A stretch of DNA of 64,000 nt from Lytechinus pictus. Lineage: Eukaryota. This document shows positions 1-31,300 of this stretch, in pieces; position 1 is the stretch's first letter, and each line of letters begins with the position of its first letter. Where the stretch lies: NCBI RefSeq assembly GCF_037042905.1, contig NC_087256.1, forward strand, positions 5,022,001-5,086,000, in the 5' to 3' direction. A program made the position numbers and the translations under genes. The notes beneath the pieces are model-generated. The model was not told where the DNA came from, did not search any database, and saw only the letters and a list, made by a program, of their open reading frames with translations.

Positions 1-1322
1 AAATGACCCTTTTAGGTGAGGATACATGTATATATTTATAAAATCAGCTCGCGCTTCGCGATCGCATTTCGCCGAGGAGATACGTATCTTTTTCGTGAAT
101 TCTTACAAATAGCCCTTATTTTTCTCCATTTCAGGTAATAACAATTTCAGCCCATCCTTCTTGCTTACATTAATTGCTTGGTTAGATACACATCGTGGGA
201 TTACTTCTCCCTATTATGTCCCGATTTCAGCTCGCGCTTCGCGCTTGCATTAATTGTTTTGACATGAATCATTACAAAAAGTGCTTAGAATATTCAGTCA
301 TAGAATCCTAATGTTAAAAAAGAATAGGCTCGCGCTTCGCCCTCGTATTAGGGCGATTTATTCAATGATATACCTATCATGTCTATAAATTCAGGTCTGA
401 ATATCAATAATTTTCAGCTCGAATCATGTTTATGATGATACGTATCTTTTTAAGTGTTAATATATTTATTTTTAATCTTATATCTTGTGCAGCGTATTTT
501 GTTGTGATTTTTATACGGTAAATAAAACCAAACCAAACCAAACCAAACCGAAACAATGAAGACGGATATGATGACGATGATAATAAAAAATGATAATAAT
601 GATAATAATAATAATCATCACCATCATCATGTTTACAATAACACTATTAAGGTTTCATTGGGGTCTACGAAATGTTTCAATTGACACTCGTCCGATGAAC
701 TTTTAATGTTTATTGGTTTGCTTATCTGGACGGTTAATCCATTGGTTAAACAGTTTAACACTAATCAGTACAATCCATCAGTTGGTTAAACCTTAGATCA
801 ACATCTCCCACGAATCACTGTCAACTATCATATCTCTTCCAGGGGTGATGACCTAATTAACTATTGAATAGATGTCAGAAGAAATGTTTCCAATACTGTG
901 TTGGTCGCAAAGGCCACAATTTGTTTTATCTATTAATATAATACTATAAAAACTAAAGTACAAAGCGTTTTACAATGCACTTAGTTTCAGTATTTATTGA
1001 CATTTTTGGTCTATATAGTATTGCAATGTTTAGTGAGTGATGGGAATTATAATTATTATCATTATTGTTGTATTTATTTTGATTGTGATCATTGTTAATA
1101 TCATTATCTTTAAAGTGTTGTTTGTATTAAAATCATCATGGAATGGAATTGAATTAAAGACTTGATACGTACGTATTCATGCACAATTCAAATCAAAATC
1201 AGAATAAAATAAAGCAAACAAAAACAGTAAAACAGCACTACCGTCTTAAAAGAGATTTTTAATACGATACCCCTTTGACAATTAGCAATGCACTCCCCTG
1301 AAAATTACACATTGACAATTAA

Positions 1323-8992: not shown

Positions 8993-11900
8993 CTGTAAAT
9001 AGTTTTTAAAAAAAATATCATATTAAGCGATTTCATTAAGATTTCTCTTTTTTTATTAGACTTTCCTACTGGAAAGATCTCAGTTTCCCACAGTGTGTTC
9101 TCTGTGTGGAACACAATGTGAAACCACCTTCACACTCTGACCCACCTATTCGACCACGTGAACACGCTGCTGTGAACAGTCACACTGTCCACAGTGTGAA
9201 AATACCTGTAAACTGTCGACTTTGAGCCTGTTAATAGTGTGAATAATGTTTTCACATACTGTGTGTACACACTGTGTGATACTGTGTTCCTTCTACTTGT
9301 ATTGACAATATCTTTAAAAATGTTTTGGATAAGCCGATGCTACCTGGTATTTTGTATTCAGATCTATATGACCATTTCCCATCTTTCAATTAACGAACGC
9401 TTTTTCACCAAGTTACCACACCCATGTGAATAACAAAACTCACGTTAAACACCAAATAGACTTTAAGTCATTGTGTGAAGATCTAGCAGTTAACGATTGG
9501 TCCTCTGTGACAAACTTATCCAATGTCAACGTAGCTTACGATACTTTTATTAAGGGTTTAAAAGAGACTATTTCCAAGCATTCAATGATATCATCCGGTA
9601 GAGAAAGAAGTAGAGCACCCCAAAACCCCTGGATTACAAGAGGCATTCTTAAATCCATTAATAGGAAGGAACACTTATATAAGCGATATTTAAAACTGAA
9701 AACCCATAACATGAAGAAAAAATACTCATCCTATAAAAACAAACTTATTCATATTGTACGTGTCTCTAAACAAAACTATTTTGCTGCAAAACTCAAATCG
9801 AATTGTTGTGACTTAAAGAAAACTTGGAATATTCTGAACAGCCTGCTCGGTAAAGAAAGATCGTTAAAATTGCCTTCATTCATTCGTAAAGATGGCGTGA
9901 AACTTACTGAACAGAAATTAATTGCAAGTGCTTTTAACTCTTTTTTTTTGTTAATGCTGGTTGTTTTGATGATCCGAGGCCCATTGGATGTTTTCGTGAT
10001 TATTTAAAAAAAAGTGTAACCCATTCTTTTTTTCTTTCGCCTACAGACAGAAACGAAATTTTGAAGTTATATTGCTCTTAAAGAATAAACATTCATGTGG
10101 GGTTGATGATATGTCACCATATCTTGTAAAGAAAATAATTAATTATATTGTTGAACCTTTAACCCACGTGTTTAATTTATCTTTTCAATCTGGATTATTT
10201 CCGAATTCAATGAGCGTTTCAAAAGTTATACCCCTATTCAAAAAGGGTGACAAAAACGATTTGTCAACTATCGTCCAATTTCATTGCTGTCGACCTTTTC
10301 CAAGATTCTAGAAAAATTAATGTACAATCGATTATTTACTTTCCTCAATAAACATTCAATTATTTTTTCTGAGCAATTTGGATTTCGAAAATGTTATTTT
10401 ACAGAGTCAGCTTTACTTTTTGCTTCTGAACTTCTGTATAGATTTTACGAAAAAAAAAGAGATAGCTTTGGGGGTCTACGTAGACCTTAGCAATGCATTC
10501 GATTGTCTGGATCACCAAATCTTATTACAAAAACTAAATTTTTATGGAATCAGAGGTATTCCCTTGGAATGGTTTAAAAGTTATTTATCAAAAAGAACGC
10601 AATTTGTAAAATATAATGAAACTCATTCTGAACTGCTTTTTATACGACAAGGTGTGCCTCAAGGTAGTATCCTGGGCCCGTTATTAATTTTGTTGTTTAT
10701 AAATGACATTATTGAATCTTCAAAGAAATTACATTATATATTATATGCTGACGACACGAACATATTTTATTCAGGTAAAAATTTGAAAGACTTGATTTCT
10801 AAAGCAAATTTTGCTAATTGGTTTTCTGCAAATAAATTGAAATTAATGAAACAAAAACCAAATATATGATTTTTAATTTTGGCAGAACAAATGATACTGT
10901 TATTGAAAATATAACTTTGAAATTGGACGGTGAATGTATCGACCAAGTTCAATTTGGAAATTTTTTAGGTATAACTATTGACAACAATCTTTCATGGGAA
11001 AAACATATTGAAATAATTTCCAAGAATGTTCGATGTAATGTTGGCGTTATGTGTAAACTAAGACGTTTTTTTACCATCTTCTGCCATGCTTTCTTTATAT
11101 TATACACTTGTATATCCGTACTTAATGTATTGTAATCTTGTATGGGCAAGAACATTTGATAAATTTTTAAAACCCCTTTTCATACTTCAAAAACGGGCTG
11201 TTCGTTTATGCTGCAACGCCACCTTCTGGGCACACACATCTCCATTGTTTAAATCTTTGAAATTACTTAAATTTGCAGATATTCTTTCCTAAGGTACATC
11301 TTTATTTATGTATAAATTGAAATATTTTATGTTACCAGATACTTTTTATGACAGTTTTCATTTGAACTCCGATTTTTACTCAATTAATACAAGAAAAAAG
11401 GGTGACTTTCGTCTTCCAAAATTTACAAACTCTTTTTTACAAAATAGATCAATTAGATTTCAGGGATCAAAAAATGGAATTCTCTAAACAGTGATTTAAA
11501 GGGTACATCGAATTACATTTCATTCAAAAATAAATCAAAGAGCACAATACTTGTCACTTATTGATATATTCAAATTTTGCTGAATGATTCTGATTATTTC
11601 TTTAATGTTAATTAATTTTTAAGTTTTCGTATGACTTTATTGTTATATTTCTATCGTTATTCATTTTATATATATTTTTGTATCTATACTCTCATTGTAT
11701 ATTTCATTATTTTGTATGTCGAGGGTTACTTGTTTACAAGTTTTTAACTTTTTTAGCAATCCTGGTATTTTATGTACTACGTTGTTTATATATTGTTTAT
11801 ATATATACTTTTTATAATACTTTCCTAGAATACTTTGCAGATGTCATGATTGCTTTGTTATTTTATGTCATTCTATATCATCCACCTATAAATTTGTAAG

Positions 11901-14900
11901 TTAAATCATTTTGAGAGGGAAAGCTCCAATTGGATCAACACAGTTGACTATAAACTTTTATCCATTTCTATTTTGGTCACCATGAAGAATTCAGAATTTT
12001 ACCAAAGAGGAGCCCACTTTTTAGCAAACAAGTTGACAGACAAAAATTAAAGAATAAACAAAAATAGACATTAGGACAAAGGCCGCTCGCCCCGGTATAG
12101 GAAATGATATTATGTCGTAAAAGTAGCCGAAGTTTCGACATTTTTTGAAGTACCTGATCAAGAAGTCCACAGCCATGTATAGGATATTCAATCTGAGGAT
12201 TTAACGTTCCATCGGTGTGTATGATATCAACAAAGACTGCATCCGATTTATCGATAAGACACTCGTTTCCACATCTAGTGAATTCAGGTCCGGCTGGATC
12301 CAATCCTGGAGGAAAAAGAAAAAGTAATGGTGCGTTTTGATGTAACCATCAATAATACACAGAATGAATTAATCCATAATCTTATACAAAGGAAATAGAG
12401 TGTTTTTGAGAGGAAAATACTTGTTTTGTCACTTGGTAACATAATAAGTGAGACGAGTGTAAACAGCACAGGTCTGAAATCTGCATTGTGCTGACCAGGA
12501 CCCTGTTGCACAAGTTTTATCATTATGGTAACTTTACCATCCAATGGTAACTTAACTGCATGGGATCTTGGATTTTGATTGGCTGTTGGTCAGCCCAACC
12601 AAGTTACTTACCATTGGATGGCCCAAAGTTACCATAAATTAACAGTAAGTTTTCTGCAACCGGCCCTGGAGAGCGTATCATGAAAGGACTTGTCGGACGT
12701 TTTATCCGACGGTTACCATAGTAACAATGCTTCACAGCCAAACTAAATCAAGGAAAGTTGTCAGATCTGACAACTTGTCACATGAAAATGTTTATGAAAC
12801 CCAGACTCCCCGATGTGAGTAGTTGTGGACTTGAGGTGGCGCTATTTAGGCTGCTATTTTTCTGCTTTAAGACATTTCCACTTACACTGCATGCTATTCT
12901 ATCTGTGTTATTTCAGATGAATGATGACAGGCATCTCCTCCCCCCTCCCCGGGGGAGGTGGCGTGTCCATCTCGAATTTTGTGTGGCAGGCTATGGGGGG
13001 GGGGGGTCGTCTGGACCCACCAGAGCGACCAACGATCTCAATAACAGAATTATAACTACCAAAACATCACTACTTATTCATTTCGACTTAATTATTATTT
13101 TGCTTGTTTGTTTGTATGAGTTAGTTAGGTAATTCTTTCCTTTTTTCTGCTTTGATTTTTATTAAATACTACGTTACTTAATTTGGGTCGGCCATAGATA
13201 AGGTTAATTTCTTCTTGGCTGCTATGTACGCTTTCTGTATAATAATGTATTTATGTGTTTGATTTATGCAGTGCTTGTGCTATTTACATTGTTGTTTTTA
13301 TACTGAGAAAAATTAATTGAATTGAATTAAATCCTTTAGAATGAGACCCAATTGGAATGATGGGTCATTATTATAAGCTGACCAATGTGTTTGAGGTATA
13401 TCGCATAACACTGGTCAGAAAATAATTACAGTCGATTTTCGACTGAATTTATTAATGCAGCGCTAACGACATTCGTATTAACGGGCAAGTCTACCCCCCC
13501 CCCAAAAAAAAGGGGGGGGAATGATTTGAATAGAAAGAGAAGAATATAACAACTAAAATTTCATAAAAATCGTATGTAAGAGAAAAAAATTATTACCGAG
13601 GTTTTTTTTTTTTTTTTTACCTGACTGCTAAGAAAGCACGAATGCCTGTGAGCAAGCAACCAGGGGACCAACAGCTTAAGGTCCTCTCCGAGGGACCTGG
13701 TAACGAGGATAAATGCCTTACCAAAAGGCACTAGCGCACCACTTGGGAATCGAACCCGGGTCACCGGAATCCGAAACCCCCGCCCTACCGACTGAGCTAT
13801 CGCGCCTCCTTTAAAGCTTCGTGTTTTTTATACAAAATACGATTATACACAACACAGTGATATGCAAATGAGAGAGTCGACATTATCTCACACTTTCTGT
13901 TTCTTTTCTTTCTTAGCATGGAAATGTATAAAATATTTTATTTTTGCAGATATGACAATAAAGCAGCATCTTCAATCAATTACGTATAAGGTCGTAACCA
14001 TGGTTATCCCACATATTCAATGAAAAATAAACCTTGTTTCATATTAGAATGAGAAAGATATTAAGATATTTCAAATTCTATATTATTTACAATAAAATAC
14101 AAAACTGCATGTAAACTGAAATCATACAGCTATATTTAAGTAAAAGCTAGAAAGTTCTATCTTTCCTGCATCCATGGACGCCGGAAGCGAGGCAGTCGAT
14201 CGCCCCCAAAGTGGGGGAAACACACCCCCACGACAAAAAGGGATAGATAAATAAAAAAGAACAAGAAGTATTGTCATTAATTTTGAGAGAGAAAACAAGT
14301 GTGACACTGCACCGATGAGACATGCAAGGGGGTTTATCAGAATTTAAAAGGGCACTATTCACTAGCAGATCCAGGGGGGGGGGGCAAAGCCGGCCCGTAA
14401 TCCCCCCCTTTGGAAAATCCTGGATCCGCCCCTGGCACTATTTTTACGGGATTCAAAGAAACACTTCGAAAGATCTAGTTAATCAATTTTTTTACAAACC
14501 TTCACTAGTATCACTAAAAATCATTTACAAGACCTAATCACTTGATCCATCAGACTCACCGGTCAGTCGTCCAACTTGTCCACTCAAGGCCTCACCAGCA
14601 TACCCCGCGGTATGTGCCCCCAAACTATGGCCGATGATATGCATGCTCCCATACGAGGCACCGGAAACAGCCTTCAATCTATCGATGAGTTTGCCAATAT
14701 CGCGACCAACAACCCGGGTATTAGCTCTGCTCTGTGCGTAATTGATTCGCCCTGCCCCTTCTTGCCAGTCCACCATTATAACATTCATATTCTAGAACAA
14801 GGGCGGGGGAGAAGAAGCAAATAAAAAATAGGTCATTGTAATATATAGGCCCATGTATAACTTTTATCAGTACAGAATTACAAATGAAAAAAAAAGAGAC

Positions 14901-17900
14901 ATAACTTCATTTCGTTTGTTTGTTACCATGCATTACCACTGATGACTAATCAGATCAAAATAAAATAACCAAAATCTGACAATTGAAAAAAAAATCACAA
15001 TGGTATGATTCTTTCAAAAAAATTCGATACTAATTCAACAATGTATATATCTGTCAACTGTTTCATGTAGAGATATGTATTTGGTGTTGTTGTATGCATG
15101 ATTTTAAATAACAAAAACATGTATCATCCAGTATGGTAGACTGATAATTGGCACACGAAATATTGATTATTATAACAACTGTTCTTAAGTTTAATCTTAT
15201 CATCACTATTAGTATTATTAGTATTATCATTATCATTCGTCTCCCCTCGTCATTTATATCCCAACCATCACTAGTAACCTTTAAATCAGCGCCCTAAAAG
15301 TAAAACCTGAGCCTTAACGCACACGACACACCTCCAGTTTAAACACCTTTATGGAGTCTTTTGGAGGAATCCTACCAAGTAATCCTACCAAGTACCAGAA
15401 TCATCATCATCATTATTATTCCTCTAAACAGGATCAAGTCCGTATTTTTTCTTGAACAACTTTGCTCTAACAAAAAGCACCAAGTAATTTCAAGTGCAAC
15501 TAGGAACTTTGCACTACTAATGTCCGAGAGTCTTTCTTATCAATCTGGTTGTACCCAAGATAGCTGCCTTCTGAATGTCCTACATCCGAAGGTGAGGAGA
15601 GATCTTGGTTATGCAGGCTTCCATTCCCTTCTTCACCATGTTCACCATTCCTGAGTGACCAATGATGACTGGTGTGACCTCTGCCTTCACGTTCCACATC
15701 CTCACGATCTCAATCCTTAGGTCTTGATACTTGAGCCGTTTGTCTCTTTCCTTTACAGCAATGTTGATATCATGGGGAACAGAGACCTCAATGATATTTA
15801 CTACTTTGTTGTCTCTGACGATGATGTCCGGCTTGTTGCAGTTGCTGGTTCTATCCGTTAGTATGCCACAGTTCCGATATATGGTGCTGTTATTGATCGT
15901 GGTGATCGTTTGTGGCTGATGTTCCCAAGCGTGATCACAAGTCATTTTACCGCGATCCTTCAGTAGTTATTATTATTATTATTATTATCATCATCATCAT
16001 CATCATTATTATTATTATTATTATTATTTCCATTGTCCACAACTTGATGTTATTATGTTGGTATATTAAACAGCAACCGGACTTCTTCCAGAAATCTAGG
16101 GTTATTGTTCTATATTCNNNNNNNNNNNNNNNNNNNNNNNNNNNNNNNNNNNNNNNNNNNNNNNNNNNNNNNNNNNNNNNNNNNNNNNNNNNNNNNNNNN
16201 NNNNNNNNNNNNNNNNNNNNNNNNNNNNNNNNNNNNNNNNNNNNNNNNNNNNNNNNNNNNCATACATGTAATTGAAAAAAATAGTATCACCTTATAGAAA
16301 ATATAAGCATATAAAGAGGTAGGGAATCATTAAGATTTTTCTATGGGGCGTGGATTACAAACTTTACTCGTTTTGGGGTCAGATAAACCTGTATGTATAC
16401 ATTTTAAAAACTATTTGCATCATCTTATTATGTGTTTGGTTAGAATTTGGATCTTTCTTGCTTTGCTCGCTTGCTATACCTTTACCCCAAATCCGTGACT
16501 TAGTCTGCTGCCACAGACCCTGACCAACAAATAGGTCTTACTACCTCAGATACAACTTGTCAGCGAGAGGGGGGGGGGGGGGCTCTGTACCCAAGTCATT
16601 GTAGGCTGAACATTCAGACCTCTTAATTCGGGTGAAGGGTTTGCTCAGCCGACTCTCCTTGACCTACCTCATCTACGAGTGCCTTCTTCATATCTTGAGC
16701 CCAACCTGATGTGTATACGTCTGTGTAGCCGTGAATTATGAATTTTGTGCCTCGATTACCCTTGAAGATGGACAAAAAAGAGTATTATTAATTTTGGCCA
16801 ACCACCCACGTTTTGGACTGGACGGGACTTGACAAAACTTAAAATACAACAAGAAGAAGAAAGAGAAGAACGAAAGAAGGAGAAGGAAGAGAAGGATTTT
16901 TATGTACATGTATATTGTATACATTAATCAAATAGATATAATGATAACATTGATAATAATCATATATAAATATGAAAGTGATGATGAAAATAATTTTCAA
17001 AAGCTGAACAGTTTTGTTCTTAAAGCAATTTTCTTTTTTTTTTAATGAAAGGAGTAACTCAGTAAAAAGAGCGACTTCTATAGCACAAAAATGATGATGA
17101 TGAAAAATGGGAGACATTTGAAACACACAAAATGATCCTTTATGACTTGTGCAGAATTTTGTGTGATTATTTCAGTTGGCAAACGGGGACTGAGTTGCCC
17201 CAAAAAAATCATCTCGAACGACAAGCCATGTTAAAAATGGTAAAGGTTGATAATGCGAATTTACAAGGGTACAAAAAAGGTATTCACTTTTTTTAATATT
17301 ACCCCCAAAGACTTAAAGAAATTATTTTAATAAAGTATTAAGAAATGATAAAAAATTACCTCGAATTTTGAATTTCGGATGGTGCTGTCATCATACCGGT
17401 CGAGTAGCTCTTTAGAGTAACCGCTATTTTTCTCTGGAGTATAGAGCCAATACTTTATCACGATTGCTTCGGGACTCTCTGGACAAGCATGGTGGCAACC
17501 ACTGCCGTAGCTGAAATAGCCCAGATCGCCATATTTGACACTAGCAGCTTCACACCCTAGAAACAAACAATAAATTGTCATTTAAAGCAAATACGAACCA
17601 GGGACCTTAATAGCGCCACCTCAGGTTCTAAACCACTTAAATCTGCATGGCCAGGTTCCTATTCCGTATTGCAACATTCTGAGTAGTGTTGTTTTGTAAT
17701 ATAGGCCCACTTGAATGACAACATACTGATTCACTATTTAAATCATTAATATCGAAATTTGTTACCTAGTAGCAAGATGTAATTTTTCCTCTCAAGAAAA
17801 TTTCAGCTTCTTCTTACAAATGAAATTTAAGGCTATTTTATTTTCTGTATTATTGGTAGTAATCTCAACGGGTATTTAGTTATTTAGAACGCACAGTCAA

Positions 17901-20900
17901 TTAGAGACCCTATACAATGTTGGTCAGTTTGGTCATGTTATCAAAAAAATATTCCATGTCTTGTAAAATAATCTAGAAATGATATTGTCGAAAAATCATG
18001 ACCACGTGCATTTCAAAGAGATATATCTTTGTATTACTTTATTTCATAGAAGTTTATTTACCTATTCATTTGTTGCAATGCTAATGAGCTAATGTTTTTA
18101 TTCAAATCAATTCAATTTAAAGTCGTATTAATTCAATTCCAAAAACAGAAAATTAATACAAACTTATTGCACCATGCGTCTACATTCAAGAGCATAGCTT
18201 AGAATTAATAGTATAATCATAATTATATACCACTGTCAACTTTGTGATTGTCACATGAATTGATATCACCATTTATTTCCAATCATTGTTCACAATGTGC
18301 AGGGGCCGCGGAACAGTTTTCAAAGGGGGGGGGGGCTGAGCCAAAAGTGGGGGCTGACCATGCAAAATCACAATCATATGGTCATTTTTATGTATTGGTA
18401 CACCAAATACAACAAATAAGCACGAAAAGGAATGATAATAATGATAATGACTAAACAGGGCAACCTAGAAATCGTCATCCCACACTGTTTCGAAATCTAG
18501 CAACGTTATCAAATCTAAGAACCAGACTTGTGGAAACAGTTTAAAGATGATTTTTGATGTCATTGGATAATGCTTTCCTGTTTGGACCCATACAACGAAG
18601 ATCATATATTGAGAATAATGTCCTGTGTCTTGGTAAATGAAGAAGATGAGCTTGTATTGTGTTTATTCAGCCGCCCTTCCGTTCAGCTTTGTGGTCACAC
18701 GGGCCTAATTACAACTGGCAGGCAAAAAATATTCATTCGACCCAACCCGTTCTCGATTTTTAAATTTGATTTTGCTGACTGACAAAAATGAATGAATATG
18801 ACTGACAATCTAACACTGATTCTATAGGGAGGGTACCCACTGAACTTCCTTTTTCCAAATTTGAAAGATATGAATTTTTTTACTGGCGGAAAAATTAGGG
18901 CCATTTTACTCTCTCAAGTGTGCGTGTGTGTGTATTTGAGTTTTGTCAGACGTGTGTCAATCAGATATGATTATTTAACGTCACCATCCGAAAGACGTGA
19001 CCAGGGCTCGAACCTCGAACCTCTGCATCAATGTGTAACTTCCCCACAGCTTGGATTACAGGCGCACGCCACAACGCCCAGTGATGAATTTGATTGTAGT
19101 CTTCATAAATGCCGATTTATTTTTAAAATGAGCTTGTCGAGGTACCTTTTCTGGTCAGATATGGAATGTCAGACATATATCCTGTCCACTGGTATATAGT
19201 AAACATTCAACCCTCGAATTTCCTCCTTATTTTTTATGAATTTTTTTAAAGTACCACTTTAACACAAGAGCCTATGGGAAATGAATTAGGCCTGTGATAC
19301 CTTGTTAGGCGTAAAAATCCCAGTCTTTCCCGGGTTAAATCACGAAATGTACACTTCTATCAGAGCGATTATTCGTTCTTCTGGTTTCAAAAAGCGAACA
19401 AATTCTGTGAGTGAAGTGAACGATTCTTTTAATGGATGCAAGCGAGGTGATTAAATATAAATTGTATTTGACATGTTTGATAACAATATTTTGTTGACAA
19501 AATTACATTTCTTGATGAGGCTTTTTATCTACGCTTTTCCGTTCGCTCGCACTCGATTGGATACTCTCGCTCGGAGTTTTCGATTCAACGACGCACATCG
19601 GATTCAAGAATACATTAAATGTATTGAAAATGCCCGTCAAATGACAATGAATAGCTGGGAAGTCTTTGTCGAAAATTGTTAAACTCGAACAAAAGTTTCG
19701 TATAAAGTTTCGGAGCTGACGGAATCATTTGCAAATATAATTTATGTCGTTTGTCCAGCGTCCAGGACGAAACAGCTATTTTGATTCACAAATTTTCGAA
19801 AAAAATACATCGTGATTTGAAAGGCATTTGACCATACATTTTCTATGTTCTTGAATGCGTCATGTGACGTAGAAGCTGAAAGTACCTGTAGGGGAAAGGA
19901 ACGAACACAGTGAGACCAGTGTTTGTGTTTGGCTACTTTGAAGCAACCGTGTGATTGTATGATGTGGTAATTTCTTCGTCAGCCGTGGCATACAATTTTT
20001 GAGGGGGGCTAGATATGGCGTATCGGGCAAAATTCATAAAAAGTCGCAAGGGAGCGAAGCGAGCGAGCAAAAATATTGACATTTTTATTACAAAAATGTT
20101 ATGATATATTTGACTTAATATTCTTTCTTCTATTAAAAAAAAAATATTAACAAAAGAAGTTATTTGTTTGTTTGATATAACGTATTAAATGTGGGAAATG
20201 AGTTAGAACGATTCAAATGAGATATCACTTCTTTTCATATTAGTTTACTTCACAAGTGGAAAAGGGGTTGTTATCTGCAATGCAGCTTAATTGTCGCAAT
20301 GAAAATCGAAAATATTTTGTCTTTAAATTATGGTCATTATCAAAATGTCCTATATAGAGATGTCTTTTCACTACCGGTATTCCCCTCCGTTTAAGCGCTT
20401 TAGTTTTCATGATTTTCAGCATTTAAGAATCTATTTAATTTTCAGCAAACTACAGCAATTCACACAATCATTTTGATGATTATGACATGTAAAGACGTCC
20501 CCCCCCCCTAAAAAAAGAAATAAATATGAGCAAATAATTATTTGAAGATAAACCTGTTCTGTATATTTAAATACATAGGCCTATTTCATTGTGTACAGCT
20601 AAATAAATAGGTTTAATATTCGGTTCAACCTGGAAATCATATGAATAAAAACATATGAATGGATTCGGTTTGAATGATTAAATTAATTATTTTCATTTTA
20701 GAGCAAACAGGTTAATAAAGTAGGTACAAAGCAGAATATAAATGACAGAAATGAAACAAGGGAACTCACTGAATAGCATCGCTTGATTTGTGAGTACCTG
20801 CAATACATGACTGATTAAAATATGTGAAATTCAAATTGTAATTATAAAGCTTCAATATAAAAAAATATTATCGAATTCTAATGTGGTCAAGCTTTTAAGC

Positions 20901-21751: not shown

Positions 21752-24443
21752 CAATTAAAAACGTATCATATCGTTTGGGCAATCGAGTAATATCAGCACT
21801 TCACATTGACTGCCTGATAGCTTGTTGGAATATGGGTGATTAATTGACGATTATAAGCACGTAAAGCACTTGATAATTACAAGGATCTGTTTAAAGCTCC
21901 GTGATAATGAGATGGATTTGATTATAATATGTTATTTTCGAACACACGCTACACTATACATAAACATATATTGTAGACAATCTCTTTTCTTGCATGAAAG
22001 ACTTAAGATTCAAGATACATTTTTCCATTAAAAGTGATTGACCCTTGTACATTTTTTCACCTGTGATAATTGACAATAATTTTCATTAAAAATTTACGAT
22101 CATATCACATAATTACTGGGAATGCTTAAACCTGTGACAATGGCTTTAAATACTTCAAGTTTGCTATCGTGCGTATTCCAAAAGTAGCAGGAGAGGAAGT
22201 TTCCCCGACTTTTTTAAAATTATGTTTTATAGGTCTGTAATGATGCTTAGAAAATAGAAATGTTCAGAAAATGCAATATCAGAGATAACGTGCAATTGAA
22301 GAATGAAAAGGAGAAAAAAGAAACGGGAGAAGAAGAAGAGTGCTAAGGTAAAAAAAGAGAGGAGGTGGAGGAGAGGGAGGAATAATATTCCATCAAGAGT
22401 AAATAATCTAGGCAAACTGAATATATGAGGGCGCTGCGTAAATATTTCTCATATCCAAGTCTTGCTCCCAGACTTGCTTTCTTCAAAAAACTTTTTTTGA
22501 TTCCCTGCATGAAAACATGCTTTTAAGGAATAGCCTGAAATTATCACAATCATATTTATATTATAATCATTATCACCTTTATTATTTATCATTATTATTA
22601 TATTTATTTGATTTTTCATACAATGTAAATGTNNNNNNNNNNNNNNNNNNNNNNNNNNNNNNNNNNNNNNNNNNNNNNNNNNNNNNNNNNNNNNNNNNNN
22701 NNNNNNNNNNNNNNNNNNNNNNNNNNNNNNNNNNNNNNNNNNNNNNNNNNNNNNNNNNNNNNNNNNNNNNNNNNNTCTTCGTCTTTTTTCTTCGTTCCCT
22801 CCCATGCCCGTACGCAAAGAGTTTTGGGGGAGATCGGCAGTTGCCCCCAGACATTTTGTAAAAACCTACTTTTCTACAAAAAATTGTCACAAAATTCACC
22901 ATAGGTGTAAACGTAATCCTTCAATTTCAATTGAGAAAATGCAAAAGCGATCCCATGACTAGCTCGATCGCTTCGCTCCCTCAGTTGGAGTGCAGTGTAA
23001 TGATCAAGTTATACCAACGGCCGACTCCAAACCAAGTGATGGTATACTATGTCATTAGAGATAACGTAAAAGTTTTTGTTGGTTTGCAGTTTATTTCGTC
23101 TGTGTGACCGAGTATAACCTCAACTTCACCTTGCTCATTATCATGAGGCTTCAGACGTCATACTCTGTGGAGAGAAGCATATGGCCTTGACAATGATAGA
23201 TGGGTTTACATATCGAAGTTAATCATAATAATTATATCTCATTTAAGTAGATATCACGTTTGTTATCCATGCAATACACTAATTAGATTGAAGCTTTGTT
23301 CAGGGATTGAAAAATACACATTTACACCTTATGACACCACACGTACCTGGTTTTGTTGAAAACATAACTTTCAAGACCAAGATCACAATTGCCTTGGAAA
23401 CTCTTAACAGATAATACTTTACCTCCATGGTCCAATCATGCCTATGCCTGTATAAGCTTCTAATCCGAAATAAACACCATCAAAGATTCTTTACCATTTT
23501 ACCGTTCTATTCTTATTCTCTGAATGCCACTCACCTCCTCCCCTATACCTCCTCTGTCTGTCTCTGTTCTCATAGAATTCGCTTAGTTGTTCGTAACCCC
23601 TTTTCTTTCGACACACCCCTTACACTCCCATCGCCCCTTTCTCTCATTGTCTCCCCTCCCCCTCTCCCTTTCGTTCTCTTCCCTGTGCTTGTCAAAAAGT
23701 TTTTTTTCGCAAGTATATAATCAATTATTGCACAACCCCCTCTCTCTCTCTCTCTCTTATCGTGATTATAAGATTCGTTTCCAAATGGTAAATACAATGT
23801 CACGCCTTAATCATGATAATCATTTTGATAAACAAGCCCCTTTGCAGTTAATTGGGATTCGACACCTGTTAACTTCTCATACATTTGAATGAAAAGTCCA
23901 GCAATGAACTCGGGAAAGTGAGATAAGCTTAAGGGTCTATATGGACTTCACAAACATAACGTTATTATATTATAGTTCTTTTATAACAATTTTGAAACAT
24001 AAAAAACAACTACGTGAACCTTTCATGGCTGCAGTGAGCTTCATCCTTTGATTTCATTATATTTGTATAAAGTGAAAAAAAAAACAGTTTACACTATTTT
24101 AGAATAATAGAAGCATATTAGCACAAAAAAATCTTTGGAGATGGAAACAAATTCAAAGGGAACATGAACTGTTAAATTTATTCAGGCAGTTTCAAACGCT
24201 TATAATAATGACATTACATTGATCAGATTTATAACTATCTTTCGATCCGACTGTACTTACGACGTTCTGTAAATAGCTTTCTATAGCCACGTATTTTCAA
24301 CTCGCCATCCTAAAAAAGTGTTTTTTCATGCTTTTCCAACCTCTCAGATCCGGAGAGGTATGGCGATGTAACTGGTGTTATGTTAGAGCTGAATGACTAC
24401 TTTATCTGTAATCATGCCTGTAAAATAAAAACATGATATCACG

Positions 24444-24740
24444 CAGTGGATTACAGATGGAGGCTTGGTGGCCCTTGCCCCCCTCCCCATGAAATGAAAT
24501 AAATAAATAAAAATATAAAAAAATCACGACCAAGAAAAAAAGAGAAAAAGAAAGAGAAAAAAAGGCAGAAGGGTGAAAGGTGATATTAGTTTTTAATATT
24601 TGGCCAAAATCTATCACAAATTTTGATTTTTGTAATATAAAGTGTTAAAATTTTTGCTCGCTCGCTCGCAGCTTTTTATTAATTTTGCGCGATGCGCCAT
24701 ATCTGGCCCCGTCAAAAACTTCGGGCTCATTACACCACTG
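24444..24740. mobile_element. hAT-like MITE
   Basis: CAGTGG...CCACTG termini, perfect 8-bp TSD ATATCACG. Confidence 0.85.
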
Positions 24741-28084: not shown

Positions 28085-28375
28085 TTACATACAGTAAGGA
28101 CTCTCATCGTTGGTTTCAAGATAATACAAGCCTTCATTACAGCTGGGATCCGCCTTGTACCCCATCTCTGGGCAAATAACACTAGAACACCACCACCAAA
28201 TTCCCTCGTCTAGGGTGTCAGAGTTGGAGGTCATCTTCACGGAAGAGAATGGGCGCGTAGACGAGATGCTCTCGATGTAATACTCGACGGCTCGGCTGTG
28301 ATCACAGCTGACGGAGACTTTAGAACATCCGGGCATTTCCTGACCGTTGTTGGGGTAGAAGTCTTGATGACCAAG
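28085..28375 (-). CDS. Lipase B exon 5 (lid, catalytic His, stop)
   Basis: LGHQDFYPNNGQEMPGCSKVSVSCDHSRAV...SPYCM*. Confidence 0.95.
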   Translation of the reverse strand, partial: LGHQDFYPNNGQEMPGCSKVSVSCDHSRAVEYYIESISSTRPFSSVKMTSNSDTLDEGIWWWCSSVICPEMGYKADPSCNEGLYYLETNDESPYCM

Positions 28376-31300
28376 CTGTGACAATCGAGGTAGATAAACG
28401 CAGATGTGATTTTTTTTTGCTATAAACATGTACATTCACATGCTAAAATGTACACAATTAAAGTTATCATAAAAAAATTCAATCCAATTTATATGTTTTA
28501 ATCCCGGGGTTATCATCATCATCATCATCATCCGTTTTAAGTACAGTCCACCAGGTTGGTGTTCATACAACTCTTAATATCATTACCATACTGCGATTTT
28601 CTTCCTCTCTATCATTAAACTTTTGGCATTATCAACTCTCCATGTTATTGAACATCTTTTAAAATGTCGAATGTTTAATTAAAACAAAAATAATTACACA
28701 CAATAAGTTAAACCAGGACAGGGATTCTCAAATAGCGGCGCGCGCGCCTCTTGTGGCGCACCGAGCCTTACGGAGTGGCGCGTGGGAGCCGGTATGAAAA
28801 AATTGGGAAAATATGTGTGTAGAATTGATGTTTGATGATAATTTTACACAAAGGAAAAAACAAGTCAGTTATATTTTAAACTTAAGTCTTTGTTGATTTT
28901 ATTTTTATTTATTCTAACGTTATGGTTTTTATATACTTGGTGTATGGATTCATGTGCGAGTGTTAATAATATGTGCATCACGATAGAGGTATACAAATTA
29001 TCTCTATATGATCACAAGTGATCTGATAGCCCCGTTCGTCGGATATCTATCACGTTTTCAACTATTTCTACGGCTAATAATTTCGCATTTCCAGATTATA
29101 CATTGAAAATTGATGGAATTGCTCAGATGCAGCATTTGAAATGATGACAATAAATCCATGATTTAACACTCTTATACTTGACAATTCTTGCTTTTAATCA
29201 ACAACTGACTCCTGGCAAAGCACATCATATCGGAAAATATGGTGACATATTATACAGATATAAAATGAAGCTCTTAATTTGCATATTAGTGTGGCATCAC
29301 GAAAAGTAAGTCGGGTAAGTTTTAACCATCAAACAATTTTCACAGAAGTAAGGAGATTTAGACACATTGAAAATCAGGAACTTTGTTTCCGAAGCCGATT
29401 ATTTAAAATCCAAGTTTGTGAAAGAGAAATACTGCAAGGTATTGCCTGTTGTGCATGTGTGCAAGCCCTCGTGAAAAACTAGCGGTATCACTGGTATGTT
29501 GTGAAAAGTCACTTATCATTTGAAAAATAATAAATTGTGTAGTTTGTTTGCATTCGTGTTTCTTGTATTGATATTAATTATATCCCCTCTTGGCCATTTA
29601 AAAAGCCTCATATTCCAAAGCTTCAAGGGGCTCCGCCCCCTCGAGCCCACCAGGGGCCCCTCAGCAATATTTCGCTCTTTAGCCTATATCTCTAATCACA
29701 CGGCCAAACACCAATTACCCACCATCCCGCACGAAGGGCCTAATATATTCTCAAACTTATTTTTAAAAGTTAAATTTCAGGATCTATAGCCCTTTGTTTG
29801 CATTTCTTACTCTCTCAACAACAACAACACCAAAACGCTAGTGATGGTAATTTTTTTATACAGTATACAGTGCGTCCCAGAAAAAACGAAACCGAGATTT
29901 AGCGATGATTTATCATAACTAAATCATGAATAAAATAGACAAATGACATACCAATGTAAAGCTTAGAATCTCCTCTTTCATCTGGTATTATTTAGATTAT
30001 TCCTTATTCACGCATGATTGAGCAAAAACAATTCGAAGAAAGGATGCCAAAAACTCATTTTGCGGGGGGTATCTGAATTTCAAAAAGAAAATCACATGAC
30101 TAAAAAGTTCAATATCTTCTCTTTTCTTTGATACCTAAATCACAGAAAATGGTCAAGTAGTAAAAAAGTTATGATCCCTCGAAACAATGCTTGTATTTCC
30201 ATAATTTCATGAAATAAACGTGTTTTCACGGGTTTCCCACAGAAACTATCGCACGATAACAAAAGACTTAATGCATGGCTGATCGTCAACAAAACGGAGT
30301 GTCGAGTGAGTTTGAACGCTAGCCTGTAAAACCTCTTCATTTTATGAAATTATTGAAATTCAAGCCTTATTTCAAATAACCAGAACTTTGTTAGTTCTTG
30401 ACCATTTTCTGTAATTGAGGTATCAAATTAAAGAGCAGATATTGAACTTTTTAAAAATGTGGTTTTCTTTTTAAAACTCAGATACGGCCCGCCAAGTGAC
30501 TTTTTGGTATCCCCTTTTCAAATTGTTTTTGCTCACTCATGCGTGAATGAGAAATAATCTAAGTAATTTCAGATGAAAGAGGAGATTCTAAGCTTTAAAA
30601 TGGTAGGTCATTTGTCTATTGTATTTGCGATTAAGTTATGATAAATCATCGATAAATCTCGGTTTCGTTTTTTGTGGGACGCACTGTATATACCTGGTCC
30701 ATTAGTCCAAGTCCACCACCCCAAAAGGTTTCTCCATCTGTATGCATGACATCGACGAAGAGGGCGTCTGTTTTATCCAGTCGACAGGTATTATCAAGAT
30801 CACCACTGAAGTCTGGGCCTGCAGGATCCAAGCCTATGGGAGAGAGCGAGAGAGAGAGGGGGGGGGGGCGAAAGTAAGGAGGGGGTAAAATAACTACAAA
30901 CAGACAGAGAGAAGTATAATTTTGATAACAAACATTAGAAGGATAATGATGATGATTATGACGACNNNNNNNNNNNNNNNNNNNNNNNNNNNNNNNNNNN
31001 NNNNNNNNNNNNNNNNNNNNNNNNNNNNNNNNNNNNNNNNNNNNNNNNNNNNNNNNNNNNNNNNNNNNNNNNNNNNNNNNNNNNNNNNNNNNNNNNNNNN
31101 NNNNNNNNNNNNNNNNNNNNNNNNNNNNNNNNNNNNNNNNNNNNNNNNNNNNNNNNNNNNNNNNNNNNNNNNNNNNNATAATTATGATGATGATGATGAC
31201 GACGATGAAGGTGATGATTTTGAGAATCGACAAATCTGGTGTTTTCAAATTTCTCTCTGTTAGCTTTAGAGTACAAGTAAAATAAAAACATGATTATGTT

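Follow-up and report, generated by a model that had tools for sequence, protein, structure and literature searches.

Can a genome outside the vertebrates build a short interspersed element (SINE) that begins with a piece of 7SL RNA? The question is raised by a 165-nucleotide (nt) repeat copy on the minus strand of a 64,000-nt stretch of the genome of Lytechinus pictus (contig NC_087256.1, positions 5,022,001 to 5,086,000), called the window below. The copy was read directly from the minus strand, from 19082 to 18918, and positions within it are given as p = 19083 - coordinate. We consider it likely to be a decayed copy of a composite SINE of RNA polymerase III (Pol III) type, built by a head swap in which the 5' end of 7SL RNA came to stand in front of a B box, body and tail of another origin.

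The head and its likeness to 7SL RNA

The region 18850-19150 (301 bases) was scanned with cmscan against all 4227 Rfam families, and the top match was Metazoa_SRP with 31.8 bits and an E value of 8.4e-7 for the 301 bases searched (about 2e-4 when scaled to the 64-kb window). The alignment places 19082-19037 against model positions 1-45, so that the first position of the model coincides with the first of the element, and the posterior probabilities are near 1 across all of these positions. Counted from the alignment, 35 of the 45 positions are identical to the Metazoa_SRP consensus (78%), with one inserted base. The likeness of the head to the 5' end of 7SL RNA exceeds chance.

The same alignment also gives the structure of the head, with 13 of 14 pairs acceptable in helices 2-4. 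All three pairs of helix 2 are standard, two of them altered on both sides compared to the consensus; in helix 3 a single pair, U10.U17, is flagged as a mismatch, and the three pairs of helix 4 are standard. No base differs from the consensus in the UGGC loop or in the CCUGUAAUCC U-turn. Of the two loop-loop pairs in human numbering, G14-C34 would presumably be kept and G13-C37 would turn into G.U. The family mir-1268, which we take to be an Alu-derived microRNA, was also among the Rfam matches and fits the likeness to the Alu domain. No tRNA was called at the head by ARAGORN, which over the window calls only a tRNA-Arg at 13734-13805, and neither the whole element nor its body matched a tRNA family of Rfam at E <= 10.

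The likeness to 7SL is limited to the 5' part. The 3' end of the Metazoa_SRP model was mapped to p 80-94 with low posterior probabilities and several non-standard pairs, and this weak match was rejected as the 3' part of the Alu domain, the stretch being homologous instead to the T arm and body of the relatives described below. A convincing 3' Alu-domain part is absent, as is the 7SL B box, and what the element holds of 7SL is only the 5' 46 nt.

The original prediction, made from the letters alone, had seen here a SINE with a 7SL Alu-domain head. The letters it quoted are all present on the minus strand, and both the 7SL-type head and the conserved U-turn are confirmed by the Metazoa_SRP match over positions 1-45. 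A head scoring better as a tRNA than as 7SL (signal recognition particle) RNA had been named among the results that would speak against it, and neither ARAGORN nor Rfam gave a tRNA match there. The description of the head as Alu-like holds for the 5' part, while the 3' half of the Alu domain is missing, which had been overlooked.

One module with three front halves

Marine metagenome contigs were scanned with the body motif GTCTTTCGGATGGTGACGTTAAA, which occurs once in the window where 0 occurrences are expected by chance, and four loci (L001-L004) were obtained. One of these, L001, was a bare 22-nt motif match that was taken as chance and rejected as a relative. The B-box region, body and tail are common to the window copy and the other three loci, with about 88-100% identity over the matched pieces according to alignment and blastn; compared to L003, homology is detectable by blastn from p ~69 to the simple-repeat end. 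L003 and L004 each have a front half of their own, unrelated to that of the other and to the head of the window copy, and with an A-box-like motif (TAGTGGTTAG in L003, GTCGAGCGGTAA in L004). These front halves are tRNA-like by eye only, since neither ARAGORN nor Rfam called them, the best match being to the weakly scoring, tRNA-like mascRNA. One module of B box with T arm, body and tail is thus seen with three different front halves, which shows head swapping on a fixed module, and because the module is common to SINE-like repeats with other heads, the window element can be read as a tRNA-SINE chassis whose head was swapped. The two relatives with tRNA-like heads look like the tRNA-type SINE class of sea urchins. 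The body motif was not found in the viral contig and genome contig collections, and its strings brought up no relevant paper in the literature searched.

The features of the copy are collected in Table 1. Nothing is common to the relatives past the simple repeat, so the 3' boundary is placed at about 18918. There is no run of four T within the element, and the first TTTTT, in the flank, is presumably the would-be first Pol III terminator of the SINE copy. A 112-amino-acid (aa) open frame on the plus strand (18861-19199) runs antisense through the whole SINE and is a by-product of the element sequence; its body-encoded part had no protein sharing words in the large protein collection searched, and there was no candidate open reading frame (ORF) on the other copies.

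Table 1. Parts of the 7SL-headed SINE copy and its 3' flank, with window coordinates and element positions (p)
Feature	Coordinates	p	Strand	Basis
Head, 46 nt (p 1-46), matching the 7SL RNA 5' domain (helices 2, 3, 4, UGGC loop, UGUAA U-turn)	19037-19082		-	Metazoa_SRP alignment; no tRNA call
A-box-like GGCGTTGTGG inside the head	19078-19069	5-14	-	Compared to the human 7SL A box
Linker, origin unassigned	19022-19036	47-61	-	Strong 7SL alignment stops at p 45-46; homology to L003 detectable from p ~69
tRNA-like T-arm region	18997-19021		-	Homology with L003 and L004, in their B-box region
GGTTCGA tandem duplicate	19021-19015 and 19014-19008	62-68 and 69-75	-	Sequence
B box GGTTCGAGCCC, continuing the second GGTTCGA; then TGGTCAC	19014-19004	69-79	-	Sequence
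Conserved body motif GTCTTTCGGATGGTGACGTTAAA	18996-18974		-	Identical in L003 and L004; one base differs in L002
Tail: inner hairpin AATCA...TGATT, stem 3' arm ACGTCTG, then AAAACTCAA	18936-18973		-	Alignment with relatives; 5' arm of the 7-bp stem deleted
Simple-repeat end, mainly (CA)n, forming the 3' boundary	18918-18935		-	(CA)n or (CAAC)n at the end of the relatives
TTTTT in the flank, 24 nt beyond the tail	18890-18894		-	Sequence

Compared to its relatives, the window copy has lost a piece of its tail. In L002, L003 and L004, 19 nt (GGTCGGTCCCAGACGTAAA) stand between GACGT and TAAATAATCAT and are absent from the window copy, where the junction lies at the 3' edge of the body motif (18978-18974); each edge of the gap carries a short GT(T)AAA repeat. 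The missing piece contributes CAGACGU in L003 and L004, which there would pair with ACGUCUG as the 5' arm of a stem of 7 bp that encloses an inner hairpin (AAUCA...UGAUU) before the terminal repeat. The window copy retains the 3' arm and the inner hairpin only, so the 7-bp stem cannot form. The stem itself is a reading of the tail and not a result. Since the deletion removes one arm of it, this copy is probably dead, and would be so if the stem is the site recognised by a long interspersed element (LINE).

These comparisons bear on the remaining claims of the original prediction. An acquired B box, not derived from 7SL, agrees with its presence in the two relatives with tRNA-like heads, and a chimeric origin is upheld by a 7SL head joined to a module homologous to theirs. 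The end at 18918 stands as well, as homology to the relatives stops at the simple repeat. The 19-nt gap had been missed. The wider proposal of an independently evolved Alu-like chimera survives in part: the 7SL 5' head, the acquired B box and the chimeric build hold, with only the 5' half of the Alu domain present, and the Deu/Meta-like core is at most putative.

Proposed origin and workings of the element

According to the explanation that we consider likely, the first 46 nt of 7SL RNA replaced the front half (acceptor and D arm with the A box) of a tRNA-like SINE, and the B-box/T-arm region, the conserved body and the hairpin-plus-microsatellite tail of the parent were retained. The replacement could have come about by template switching from the SINE RNA to 7SL RNA, or by recombination. 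The element would have been transcribed from the 7SL A box together with the tRNA-type B box, and the spacing of the two boxes is close to that in 7SL and Alu. The 46-nt head would fold as the Alu 5' domain, bind SRP9/14 and take the RNA to ribosomes; by analogy with Alu, such use of SRP9/14 and docking on ribosomes may be expected of this head. The tail hairpin and repeat would be recognised by the reverse transcriptase of a stringent-type LINE.

Several results weigh against this explanation. The Metazoa_SRP match of 31.8 bits is far under the Rfam gathering score of 70, because the head covers only 46 of the 299 model positions. For a genome of roughly 1 Gb the scaled E value would be near 3, at which a lone match is not significant, and the case therefore rests also on where the match lies, precisely on the 5' end of a unit with the shape of a SINE. 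In the 64-kb window there is no 7SL gene at the Rfam gathering score, from which derivation from the 7SL of the host could be argued, and no second copy of the element. The tail folds no better than shuffled sequences (z about -0.7 to -0.95), and a search at the tail revealed no target-site duplication. Just one direct repeat of 8 nt was present, AAATTCAT at 19091-19084 and 18877-18870; it lies 40 nt beyond the tail and was rejected as a target-site duplication, being probably a chance repeat because the relatives end at the simple repeat. A paralogous empty site was absent from the window.

A partner LINE was also not found among the LINEs of L002 and L006 or in the LINE fragment of the window, and this too counts against the explanation. 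The LINE in L002 (215-3190) has an 835-aa reverse-transcriptase ORF, relatives of which are about 1150-1200 aa long and also contain an endonuclease domain, and a SINE-like stretch follows the ORF. Both this LINE and a 62%-identical relative in L006 (1764-5464), another marine metagenome contig, end in ...CATGAGAA(A)ATAAAA and (CATTGT)n. As both end earlier, in (CATTGT)n, the LINE in L002 was rejected as the partner of the SINE; the old copy of the SINE-like body stands about 180 nt past the end of the LINE. In the window, a string of broken ORFs at 9426-11135 on the plus strand is a decayed LINE, in which the ORF at 10378-10869 matches RVT_1 (E 1.9e-20), and this fragment has no likeness to the tail of the SINE.

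The copy could instead be a one-off chimeric retrocopy, a single dead insertion made when the reverse transcriptase copying the RNA of a tRNA-type SINE switched template to 7SL and copied its first 46 nt. Template switching gives just this layout, in which the 5' end of a small RNA is fused to a retroposon's 3' part, and it has been named by Kojima as a route to chimeric SINEs (PMC7245038); the window, moreover, holds one copy. Speaking for a family instead, sequencing runs of two organisms from 10 studies contain about 0.1-0.2 of the sampled words of an 801-base stretch around the copy, and none contains the flanks. This share of words matches the element roughly in size, and is suggestive only. 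The spacing from A box to B box also looks functional, and we regard a one-off event as unlikely.

Less probable again is that the head is a diverged tRNA-derived head, or some other G+C-rich head, that came to resemble 7SL by chance or convergence. The overlap is just 46 nt, shorter than the 60 nt that SINEBase asks for, the score is under the gathering score, and the remainder of the element is of tRNA-SINE type. Chance would nevertheless have to account for an E value of 8.4e-7 with the first model position on the first position of the element, for a conserved U-turn and loop, and for a helix 2 kept through changes on both sides, in a head where ARAGORN and Rfam see no tRNA. That a 7SL pseudogene fragment abuts a 5'-truncated SINE through two separate events, or that human Alu-like DNA entered as an assembly or contamination artefact, is highly improbable, as 7SL-like sequence does not resume past the tail, 10 of the 45 head positions depart from the metazoan consensus, and the join is seamless, in one orientation and with Pol III-like box spacing.

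Returning to the head swap, a broader claim can be attached to it: that an echinoderm-type genome independently evolved an Alu-like SINE, in which a minimal, SRP9/14-binding 46-nt 5' domain of 7SL sits on a tRNA-SINE chassis and is mobilised by a stringent, non-L1 LINE. We put this forward tentatively, the chances being somewhat below even. If it holds, 7SL-derived SINEs would have originated independently once more, in an invertebrate family with no more of 7SL than the 46-nt 5' domain, and such a family would serve as a natural test for the part of 7SL on which the spread of SINEs depends, nature having in effect repeated the deletion experiment of Moldovan et al. (PMC11760393). It would also test whether a 7SL head still gives an advantage when the partner LINE recognises a specific 3' tail, and would mean that docking on ribosomes through SRP9/14 helps SINEs to hijack LINEs other than L1, outside vertebrates.

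Surroundings and comparison with known SINEs

The window has a G+C content of 36% and contains a second SINE on the minus strand (13602-13809), with a tRNA-Arg(TCG) head at 13734-13805 called by ARAGORN and an A17 tail. It has no likeness to the 7SL-headed element, whose body is likewise unlike it. The heads of the sea urchin SINE2-1/2_SP are tRNA-Arg-like (PMC4758252), and the second SINE may belong with them. The nearest recognisable coding piece to the 7SL-headed SINE among the ten ORFs scanned is an exon-sized ORF at 28085-28435 on the minus strand, about 9 kb away, which matches the C-terminal part of the Pfam domain Lipase (E 3.5e-19). Another short repeat near the SINE is an inverted pair of about 100 bases with 81% identity (19996-20097 and 24626-24718). 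Runs of N are found at 16118-16260 and 22633-22775 (143 bases each) and at 30966-31177 (212 bases).

The formal definition of a SINE was taken from SINEBase (PMC3531059). As it asks, the element is short (under 1 kb), with its 165 nt standing single and non-tandem in the window. The definition further asks that 60 nt or more be at least 60% identical to tRNA, 5S RNA or 7SL RNA, and here the identity to the Rfam consensus is 78%, over 45-46 nt only. Of the features of the SINE1 class, the 5' end does derive from the 5' end of 7SL (model positions 1-45), whereas the whole Alu domain with a central deletion and helix 5 kept is lacking, and only one of the promoter boxes is from 7SL: the A box lies in the 7SL part and the B box GGTTCGAGCCC in the part common to L003 and L004. 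Of the SINE2 features, the head is not recognisable as a tRNA by ARAGORN or Rfam, and the B-box/T-arm region and body are common to SINEs with tRNA-like heads according to alignment and blastn. Judged by its sequence, the element is not a classical SINE1, because the 3' Alu part and the 7SL B box are absent and the 60-nt overlap is not reached; it resembles a SINE1 at the 5' end and a tRNA-type, stringent-LINE SINE elsewhere.

In the literature searched, 7SL-derived SINEs are described only from supraprimates, a shrew mole and hagfish, and all of these keep both halves of the Alu domain (PMC13023118, PMC7245038). No report of an invertebrate 7SL-derived SINE was found in the papers searched to 2026, a search that did not cover Repbase and Dfam. 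The published sea urchin families SINE2-1_SP to SINE2-6_SP, of the Meta, Deu and CORE superfamilies, resemble the window element in having a Pol III head, a conserved body and a LINE-type tail, but all are tRNA-headed (PMC4824008, PMC4758252). The Tu-type SINEs of tree shrews and GarnAlu of the bushbaby are likewise hybrids of 7SL-derived and tRNA-derived modules, although these came from the existing SINE1 lineage of Euarchontoglires by joining whole monomers (PMC7245038), whereas in the window element a 46-nt piece of 7SL replaces half of a tRNA-like head.

With the Alu, B1 and FLAM families of supraprimates and Urop of the shrew mole (PMC13023118), the element shares its type of 5' end, which consists of the Alu 5' domain of 7SL and has an A box near +5 to +15, followed by a B box some 65-70 nt downstream of it. 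In human 7SL the A box is GGCGCGGTGG at 6-15 (PMC7245038) and the B box lies at 76-86, compared to p 5-14 and p 69-79 here. [quoted passage not shown] These families differ in consisting solely of 7SL sequence with a central deletion, in ending in poly(A) and in using L1, while in the window element a convincing 3' Alu part is lacking, the body is foreign and the tail is a hairpin followed by (CA)n.

For hagfish SINE1, Kojima has inferred a head swap of this sort, in which 7SL was fused to an older tRNA SINE (PMC7245038). Its member SINE1-1_EBu from Eptatretus burgeri (Kojima 2020, PMC7245038) retains 96 nt from the 5' part of 7SL and 44 nt from its 3' part, a whole Alu domain with both 7SL promoter boxes, and also has RTE-derived parts, in contrast to the 46 nt of the 7SL 5' part only and the tRNA-like B box of the window element. 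The two are alike in carrying a 7SL head outside the Alu/B1 lineage, in joining 7SL to an older tRNA-derived SINE and in ending in a microsatellite and not in poly(A), which implies a stringent LINE partner for both.
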